A stretch of DNA of 64,000 nt from Scyliorhinus canicula (taxonomy: Eukaryota). The DNA lies in the NCBI RefSeq assembly GCF_902713615.1, contig NC_052158.1, forward strand, positions 35,009,990 to 35,073,989, in the 5' to 3' direction. The position numbers and the translations under genes are program-made. How positions within the stretch are numbered: the stretch's first letter is position 1; the number at the start of each line of letters is the position of its first letter. The notes under the pieces are model-generated. The model searched no databases. It was given only the letters and a program-made list of their open reading frames with translations, and was not told the origin of the DNA. Positions 38,054 through 39,438 of this stretch are shown here, in pieces.

Positions 38054-39438
38054 CTAGCAGGCGTAATAGGACCAGCAGGACCACGACAAACCAGCGACGC
38101 CCAGCGTGACGGCGGAAAGCTCAGCATCACCCACCAAGGCACACCACACGCCACTGTAGCCCAGCAGGCCAGCCATGATTGACCGGTTACCCAGATGGCC
38201 CATCAAGGACAAGCAGAGTCCCATCAGGCCCAGCCCGACCCAGCAGACACCAGCCAGCTGGTGAAAGCTCAGCAGGAGAAGACACAATCCAACGTAGCCC
38301 TTGACTCCGCCACACCACCAGCAGACCTCGGCCACGTTGGCGTAGCCCAGCAGGGACAGGCAGAGACCAGCGTGTGCCAGGAGGCCGCAGCAGACCCACC
38401 AGACCCAGACCTCGTAATCCGACAGCCAGACCAGCCCGGCGAGGGCCCCCAGGTTGGGCACCACCCAGAACGGCCACGGGCGACCGCTCGAGGCCAGGAG
38501 CAGCCCGACCAGGCTCAGCCCCAGCAAGCAGGCACCCAGCAGCCGGGCATAAGCCAGCAGCAGGCAGCTCAAGCCGGCGTAGCCCAGAAGGCCGCTGGAC
38601 AGCCAGGAAACACCCGCCAGGCTCCGCTTGCCCAGCAAAGCCCAAAGCCAGCCGGCAGACCCCAGCATGCCACAGCACACCAGGTACATCTCGGCGAAAT
38701 TAGCACTCCCCGGCGAGGCGACGCCCAGCAAGACCAATACACCGAAGCAGAGCCAGGCTCTTTTCCACATGCTCCAGTCCCAATGGAAGCTGTTGGCACT
38801 CGCCAGGGGGACAGAGCTTGTCGCGTCCTCCCTCTCACAAGCCAAGCATGGGCTTATTTGCTCCTCCTCCTCCTCCTCCTCGGTGATGGGGTTTGAGACG
38901 GTCGAGTGACACAGCTGAAGAGGCTCGGCATTCCTGCCCCCCTGGTTCAGTCCTGGACTGAAGAAAGGGTAGAGTTTCTGGGTGAAGGTGCCTCTGAAAG
39001 TGTGGAGGTGGGACATGGCATCGGCATTGTAAAAGGACACTTGCCCTCCCTCACAGTCCAGGTAGACACCAATCACCCGGGGCTTGACATCTAATTGGAG
39101 ATTGCTCATTGTCAACGTGAAGGCCGTGTACTTACTCCCGTTCCTCAGCCCCATAACCCAGTACCCATTGGGAGGCGTCAGGAGGATTTCCCCTTTCCTG
39201 CTGACTGACTCCCCGGCCACGCCCAGGGTCCAGCTGCTCTTGCGGCCCACATTCACCTCCCAGTAGTGCCTCCCTGACGTGAATGCCACCGAGGCGAGGA
39301 CGCAGGGGCAGACGTCAAATCTCTGCGGGTCGTCGGGTAAGGGCCGTTTCTGATTCCCCTGCGCCACGCTGGTCAGGTCCTCGGACAGAACGAGCCAGGG
39401 ACTGGCTGTGACGGGGTCCAGGGTCAGCGAGGCCGGTC
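38054..39438 (-). CDS. TRIM gene exon 6: PRY-SPRY, acidic linker and hydrophobic multi-pass tail; stop TAG at 38054
   Basis: Acceptor ctgtttctgttacag, phase 1. ASLTLDPVTASPWL...RHYWEV...[15 protein letters not shown]...LYPFFSPG, then 284 more codons with no stop. Confidence 0.9.

Follow-up and report, generated by a model that had tools for sequence, protein, structure and literature searches.

The window analyzed in this work, a stretch of 64,000 nt from the genome of the catshark Scyliorhinus canicula, carries on its minus strand a class IV TRIM gene with six exons and 2277 nt of coding sequence, i.e. 759 codons. Exon 1 (48036..48461) includes the start codon and encodes the RING and the putative B-box (residues 1-142); it matches exactly residues 533-674 of the RefSeq protein XP_038671269.1 and ends at a GT donor. 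It is followed by exon 2 (46486..46581, 96 nt, residues 143-174), where the putative coiled coil starts and which is flanked by an AG acceptor and a GT donor, and by exon 3 (46124..46357, 234 nt, residues 175-252), which continues the coiled coil; the peptides of these two exons are also matched exactly. Exon 4 (44772..44794), of 23 nt, codes for GLNLLKQ and shows AG and GT flanks, and exon 5 (44554..44669, 116 nt) terminates with the residues WKELRALIKP. Exon 6 (38054..39438), preceded by an acceptor AG at 39440-39439, encodes the PRY-SPRY, a linker, a hydrophobic domain and the stop codon. All introns have GT at their 5' border and AG at their 3' border; exon number, borders and coding length agree with the first-pass annotation of this DNA, which had described six exons with canonical splice sites in a single frame of 759 aa.

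In RefSeq, this gene is included in an automatic model of 1291 aa (XP_038671269.1), in which an upstream TRIM gene is joined to the six-exon gene by means of an exon at 50772-50650 (minus strand) plus an upstream extension of exon 1 (48462-48536, minus strand). The model looks like a fused annotation of two adjacent TRIM genes, or a case in which a 5' UTR exon was read as coding. A protein of 759 aa that differs from the window protein by three residues, XP_038672504.1 ('zinc-binding protein A33-like'), is encoded elsewhere on the same chromosome; this second copy could stem from a very recent segmental duplication or else be a duplicate created in the assembly.

Several additional features are present in the window. 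An isolated fragment of a SPRY end lies at 22818-23003 (minus strand) and shares 97% identity with residues 405-466 in the upstream TRIM half of XP_038671269.1; it is probably a duplicated gene piece or the last exon of another paralogue. On the plus strand, 16648-17174 is the PRY-SPRY (B30.2) exon of a butyrophilin-like gene, 44-49% identical to the PRY-SPRY of the six-exon gene. A G-rich minisatellite of about 1 kb with units of 24/48 nt (31135-32209, GC up to 0.81, GC skew +0.56) is immediately preceded by an array of 14.6 copies of a 33-nt repeat (30500-30981). Two plus-strand reverse-transcriptase-like ORFs, considered LINE fragments, are found inside the large intron of the TRIM gene (42007-42996) and upstream of the gene (51245-52475).

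The domains encoded by the TRIM gene were identified with Pfam. The RING is recognized by zf-C3HC4_4, zf-RING_UBOX and zf-C3HC4 with E values from 2.7e-9 to 1.8e-8, all over their cut-offs. In the catshark protein the B-box is below the cut-off (zf-B_box, E 7.9e-4, 20.0 bits vs 24.1 bits), and so is the coiled coil (TRIM_CC, E 1.7e-5, 25.2 bits vs 30 bits); the precomputed annotation of the orthologues has PF00643 for the former, and PF25600 is present in several orthologues for the latter. PRY (E 5e-21) and SPRY (E 1e-26) lie within the first 182 residues of the ORF 38054..39475 (minus strand), and no Pfam domain was found in the residues of this ORF beyond them. In exon 6, the PRY-SPRY is encoded by 38906..39438 (residues 299-476), the linker by 38759..38905 (residues 477-525), and the hydrophobic domain by 38057..38758 (residues 526-759). 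The stop codon TAG (38054..38056) has an identical alignment position in all the shark orthologues.

Past the end of the SPRY (LQLCH), the frame of exon 6 stays open for 284 codons, as was noticed on the first reading and confirmed here. These codons comprise the linker and a domain of 234 hydrophobic residues, which together are referred to here as the tail. The linker is acidic, of approximately 50 aa, and contains the run of seven glutamates reported earlier, which is encoded by a (GAG)7 microsatellite at 38861-38881 (Tandem Repeats Finder). The composition of the 284-aa extension includes 56 L, 36 G, 19 W and 18 C; the initial count of about 16 cysteines was slightly low, and the rest of the composition described at that time holds. 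The 234-residue domain is enriched in L, G, A, S, V, W and C, and the segment from residue 519 to 759 (241 aa) has a GRAVY of +1.07 and 6% of charged residues. The coding strand is poor in A (11%), and the other frames, on both strands, hold ORFs of 89-233 aa; the openness of the frame by itself proves little, because an A-poor strand leaves other frames partly open. That the frame is counted as real rests on its third-position GC (0.81, resembling the SPRY part), on its conservation, on a low frame-specific dN/dS and on its transcription.

RNA contigs from four studies are continuous over 37600-39441 with 0-2 mismatches and without gaps or joints; the first-pass annotation had considered transcripts ending or spliced before 38750 as evidence against its reading, and the contigs run unbroken through this position. 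The sequence that follows 39441 in the contigs matches, in reverse complement, the end of exon 5 (...WKELRALIK), so that the loose end at 39441 is the 3' end of this exon. Given that the contigs pass into exon 5, they represent a spliced mRNA in which the SPRY is followed by the entire tail and by 450 nt or more of 3' UTR, whose minimum extent is 37600..38053 (minus strand), with contigs extending past 37600. Translation of the tail from this mRNA is predicted.

The tail is colinear and has the same C-terminal end in seven sharks including S. canicula, with almost no indels in the hydrophobic domain. Compared with the window copy, it is 47-78% identical in Cetorhinus maximus, Heterodontus francisci, Heptranchias perlo, Pristiophorus japonicus, Rhincodon typus and Stegostoma tigrinum. 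With a profile of the PRY-SPRY plus the tail, a skate and a stingray protein were also recovered; the latter, from Hypanus sabinus, spans 98% of this profile. Orthologues that stop after the SPRY, which had been proposed as a sign of a recent stop loss, were not encountered among these species, since the seven sharks and the stingray retain the whole tail with the same end. Around 55 alignment columns, mostly W, C, G, L and Y, are invariant across the seven sharks and one skate, and each domain has 16-21 Cys, 16-20 Trp and invariant CC pairs; the linker is weakly conserved between species and shows indels. In the four sharks for which genomic DNA was examined (4/4), the SPRY and the tail are encoded in one uninterrupted exon. 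The gene models of Rhincodon and Hypanus are devoid of the RING, which may be an annotation gap. Alignment to this profile is confined to its PRY-SPRY part for the relatives from the chimaera Callorhinchus and for numerous shark and ray paralogues, which are about 475 aa long. The presence of the fusion in sharks and in the stingray indicates that it predates the shark-ray split, and it was not seen outside elasmobranchs.

Selection was analyzed by pairwise Nei-Gojobori dN/dS in a sample of four sharks and one skate, in which Cetorhinus, Heterodontus and S. torazame were left out. The hydrophobic domain shows dN/dS values of 0.17-0.55 and the PRY-SPRY of 0.18-0.57, with dS saturated (0.7-2.5) in the deep comparisons; in the sole unsaturated pair, Stegostoma-Rhincodon (dS 0.17), the ratio is 0.31 for the domain vs 0.57 for the PRY-SPRY. 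The linker evolves much faster, with ratios of 0.2-1.0 between sharks and up to 1.7 against the skate. Among the six frames, stops are absent from the annotated one alone, and in each pair the ratio is lowest in this frame; the other frames accumulate 1-18 stops per pair. These values show that the tail is under purifying selection.

The tail matches no known family by sequence or fold. A profile search of the PDB sequences had 0 matches at E<=1. Using the predicted structure of the tail (see below), Foldseek against the PDB remained at background level (best E 0.43), the AlphaFold DB clusters gave a best E of 0.28 with TM <=0.39, the fold search of the ESM Atlas reached TM <=0.34, and the best result of VIA-align (Z 7.6) was a partial, generic helical bundle. 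The feature matches from the ESM Atlas were low-recognition bacterial hypothetical proteins, and were rejected as chance. The first reading had named a match to a well-described family as evidence against it, and none was obtained in Pfam, PDB, AlphaFold DB or the ESM Atlas. When 1.84 billion representative proteins were searched exhaustively with HMMER, three matches emerged, namely the shark cluster, a protein from a skate, and a translated (TGCTGGGATA)n satellite; the latter, marginal (E 5.6e-4) and compositionally biased, is the only match outside elasmobranchs. No further relatives beyond those recovered with the PRY-SPRY-plus-tail profile appeared in a tail-only profile search. As sequences the proteins are not new, since RefSeq lists them, unremarked, under generic automatic names. 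In the literature, no TRIM protein was found in which a polytopic domain follows the PRY-SPRY, and neither this architecture nor the orphan domain and its proposed repeat origin seem to have been reported before.

The structure of the tail was predicted with AlphaFold2 from an eight-sequence alignment; the model, which is only moderately confident (mean pLDDT 61.5, pTM 0.60), shows ten helices connected by loops of 1-8 residues, in agreement with the ten hydrophobic segments counted in the sequence and with the earlier estimate of 8-10. On the minus strand, the predicted helices correspond to 38776-38717 (helix 1), 38704-38636 (helix 2), 38626-38546 (helix 3), 38542-38489 (helix 4), 38464-38423 (helix 5), 38407-38351 (helix 6), 38341-38264 (helix 7), 38260-38204 (helix 8), 38179-38135 (helix 9) and 38125-38066 (helix 10). 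Two of them are short (14-15 aa), and several segments score under the usual Kyte-Doolittle threshold of 1.6 because of their high content of Gly, Ser, Trp and Tyr. When the N-terminus is set in the cytosol, the cytosolic loops have on average 5.1 K+R and 2.1 D+E, and the opposite loops 1.1 K+R and 3.6 D+E. These charges fit a predicted topology of ten spans in which the tail begins and ends on the cytosolic side, and hydrophobicity, helix prediction and charge distribution together suggest that the tail is inserted in a membrane.

From these results we consider, with a probability of roughly 0.7, that the gene encodes an elasmobranch-specific variant of the class IV TRIM E3 ligases, formed by RBCC-PRY-SPRY, a variable acidic linker of about 50 aa, and a conserved domain of 234 aa with ten helices, which would be integrated in the membrane and would have been born from a repeat. 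The architecture proposed in the first-pass annotation, a class IV TRIM plus a polytopic hydrophobic domain, stands after the three checks described above on orthologues, transcripts and known families. The functions that it had suggested as examples, an organelle-anchored restriction factor or a channel or pore, are guesses. No signal peptide is present, and for this reason the RBCC-PRY-SPRY part is expected to be cytosolic. Helix 1 may act as a late signal anchor, and the ten helices would cross an internal membrane in such a way that the domain starts and ends in the cytosol. The putative ligase would in this way be fixed flat on the membrane surface, where the PRY-SPRY would bind the targets and the RING would ubiquitinate them. 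In Cetorhinus, Heptranchias and Stegostoma the TRIM gene is found head-to-head with a butyrophilin-like gene, a neighbourhood that hints at an immune role at the membrane level.

The same tail could be hydrophobic and conserved and nonetheless not form a ten-span bundle; it could instead insert as hairpins in one leaflet, bind lipid droplets, be heavily palmitoylated on its cysteines, or drive oligomerization or aggregation. This possibility draws on the helices of 14-15 aa with marginal hydrophobicity, on the abundance of Cys (16-21) and Trp (16-20) per domain together with the invariant CC pairs, and on the low confidence of the AlphaFold2 model. It is nevertheless an unlikely one, given that polar turns of 2-8 residues separate ten segments about 20 residues long, that the charges alternate as expected from the positive-inside rule, and that a duplication of four helices within the domain keeps the number of helices even. 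We favour the membrane-spanning bundle.

This duplication, of approximately 95 aa, was detected by comparing the first and the second half of the domain with hhalign (probability 98.7%, E 3.6e-16, 39% identity over 79 columns), and it is also revealed by a peak at a lag of 95 aa in the BLOSUM autocorrelation and by a DNA lag of 285 nt (z 6.7). Unit A (38453..38689, minus strand) comprises approximately helices 2-5, and unit B (38168..38404, minus strand), 285 nt downstream, approximately helices 6-9. Tandem Repeats Finder reported in the tail only a 2-copy repeat of 15 nt and a (CTC)7 run; the repeats of the tail are too decayed for this program, and autocorrelation against codon shuffles was needed. 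By this procedure, the lags of 285, 78 and 10 nt exceed the shuffles; the lag of 78 nt, equivalent to a period of 26 aa, forms an intermediate level of repetition. The lag of 10, which is out of frame, reaches z values of 4.3-7.2 in the tail vs -1.5 to 1.5 in the PRY-SPRY used as control, and its observed maximum was attained by 1/500 and 0/500 shuffles; in both orectolobiform sharks the signal is weak (41/500 in Stegostoma, z 2.3 in Rhincodon). The core TGCTGG(G) occurs in all three frames with a spacing of 10, 20 or 30 nt, and the motif that recurs in the helices, C-W-A-M-L-G-Y-A-G-L, is what a TGCTGGGCTA repeat encodes in frame. An intact double decamer was absent from the whole window in a search of its 64,000 nt.

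Among the matches to the tail, the translated satellite (P0009) corresponds to a (TGCTGGGATA)33 array with a higher-order unit of 69 nt, located at positions 1-333 of a 662-nt contig (L004) of the assembly GCA_002896115.2 and gene-called as a 'protein' of 157 aa. It was rejected as a true homologue of the tail, being a translated satellite.

The out-of-frame periodicity of 10 nt and that of 78 nt around TGCTGGG suggest that the tail was born from a decanucleotide repeat, which would have been located behind the original stop codon. According to this proposal, a decanucleotide repeat close to TGCTGGGCTA would have been read through once the stop of the SPRY was lost. The repeat would have been amplified as units of 78 nt and later of about 285 nt, and the product would have been fixed before sharks and rays separated. 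A more specific scenario, which we offer tentatively and place somewhat under even odds, is that the polytopic domain arose de novo in the elasmobranch stem from a satellite of approximately (TGCTGGGCTA)n behind the stop of a class IV TRIM, and that duplications of 78 and 285 nt led to a ten-helix fold devoid of relatives; the result would be a new class of membrane-integrated PRY-SPRY ligases, encoded beside butyrophilin-like genes and acting on membrane-bound targets of immune or viral nature.

Another origin can be envisaged, in which the TRIM gene captured by exon fusion a separate membrane-protein gene, past or present, and the tail did not arise from a repeat at the 3' end of the TRIM. 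The little skate Leucoraja erinacea could be invoked in its favour: in this species the entire hydrophobic domain is encoded by a stand-alone ORF of 292 aa (L001:10001-10879), annotated as an uncharacterized protein, and no TRIM exons were found within 10 kb upstream. However, the start Met of this ORF belongs to the SPRY motif G-M-S-H-L-H-T-F, the end of the SPRY is still recognisable in it (PGL...DPLQL), and just upstream there is an in-frame stop inside a degraded SPRY-like sequence; because of these three characteristics it looks like a truncated remnant of the TRIM-tail fusion. The fusion is present in the stingray, the HMMER and the tail-only profile searches revealed no stand-alone relative of the tail elsewhere, and the out-of-frame periodicity of 10 nt favours a repeat origin, so that gene capture seems rather improbable. 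Since the skate retains the ORF of the tail without the TRIM part, the tail may act, or decay, alone. The skate ORF adjoins an Ig C2-set gene.

The remaining alternative, a non-functional read-through in which the loss of the stop codon gave access to a stop-poor, repeat-derived 3' UTR that is open only by virtue of its A-poor strand, could be invoked from the 11% of A, the ORFs of 89-233 aa in other frames of both strands and the visible repeat ancestry, but it is highly improbable: frame, length and stop are identical in sharks and stingray, dN/dS is well below 1 in the annotated frame only while the others have 1-18 stops per pair, about 55 columns (mostly W, C, G and L) are invariant over eight species, and the ORFs are present in the genomic DNA of the orthologues and not only in gene models. 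With colinear orthologues, low dN/dS and RNA contigs that cross it unspliced, the tail is not a chance read-through.

The TRIM protein with a membrane-integrated, repeat-born domain would represent an added architecture for a major family of innate-immune ligases, in which the fusion to a ten-helix domain appears to have been retained since before the divergence of sharks and rays. The tail would also be an unusually clear and old example of a complex membrane domain arising from simple repeated DNA, and given that the nucleotide repeat is still visible under purifying selection, the origin of a new membrane domain becomes testable in a concrete case.

To our knowledge, the PRY-SPRY is normally the C-terminus of the class IV TRIM proteins that have been described. 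Those of the group annotated as zinc-binding protein A33, nuclear factor 7, TRIM39 or TRIM69-like have, like the catshark protein, a RING and a PRY-SPRY, together with a B-box and a coiled coil for which the catshark protein shows weak Pfam matches, and share with it the exons of 96, 234, 23 and 116 nt followed by one large PRY-SPRY exon. Many paralogues from the same genomes, about 475 aa in length, are 55-66% identical to the catshark protein over the PRY-SPRY; they stop a few residues past this domain and cover 38-40% of the query, whereas the catshark protein adds 284 residues. The latter has the RING and the PRY-SPRY of class IV, but its PRY-SPRY is not at the C-terminus. TRIM13 and TRIM59, which are class XI TRIM proteins, have one C-terminal transmembrane helix right after the coiled coil and no PRY-SPRY. 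They resemble the predicted catshark protein in being TRIM ligases tethered to the membrane by the C-terminus with the catalytic part in the cytosol; in contrast, the catshark protein has a PRY-SPRY and ten predicted helices, and it is not a class XI member. The MARCH family, HRD1 and RNF5 are polytopic RING E3 ligases without the TRIM coiled coil and the PRY-SPRY. They illustrate the principle proposed here, i.e. a RING held at the membrane by several transmembrane helices and directed to membrane-proximal substrates, but in sequence and fold they are unrelated to the catshark tail, whose best fold matches have Z <=7.6 and TM <=0.39. Regarding the origin of the tail, C-terminal extensions that appear de novo after the loss of a stop codon, in which what used to be 3' sequence becomes coding, are the subject of PMC4494051. 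Compared with such extensions, the catshark tail seems to be old, predating the split of sharks and rays, and long (284 aa), and it is internally duplicated into a conserved domain of multiple predicted helices.
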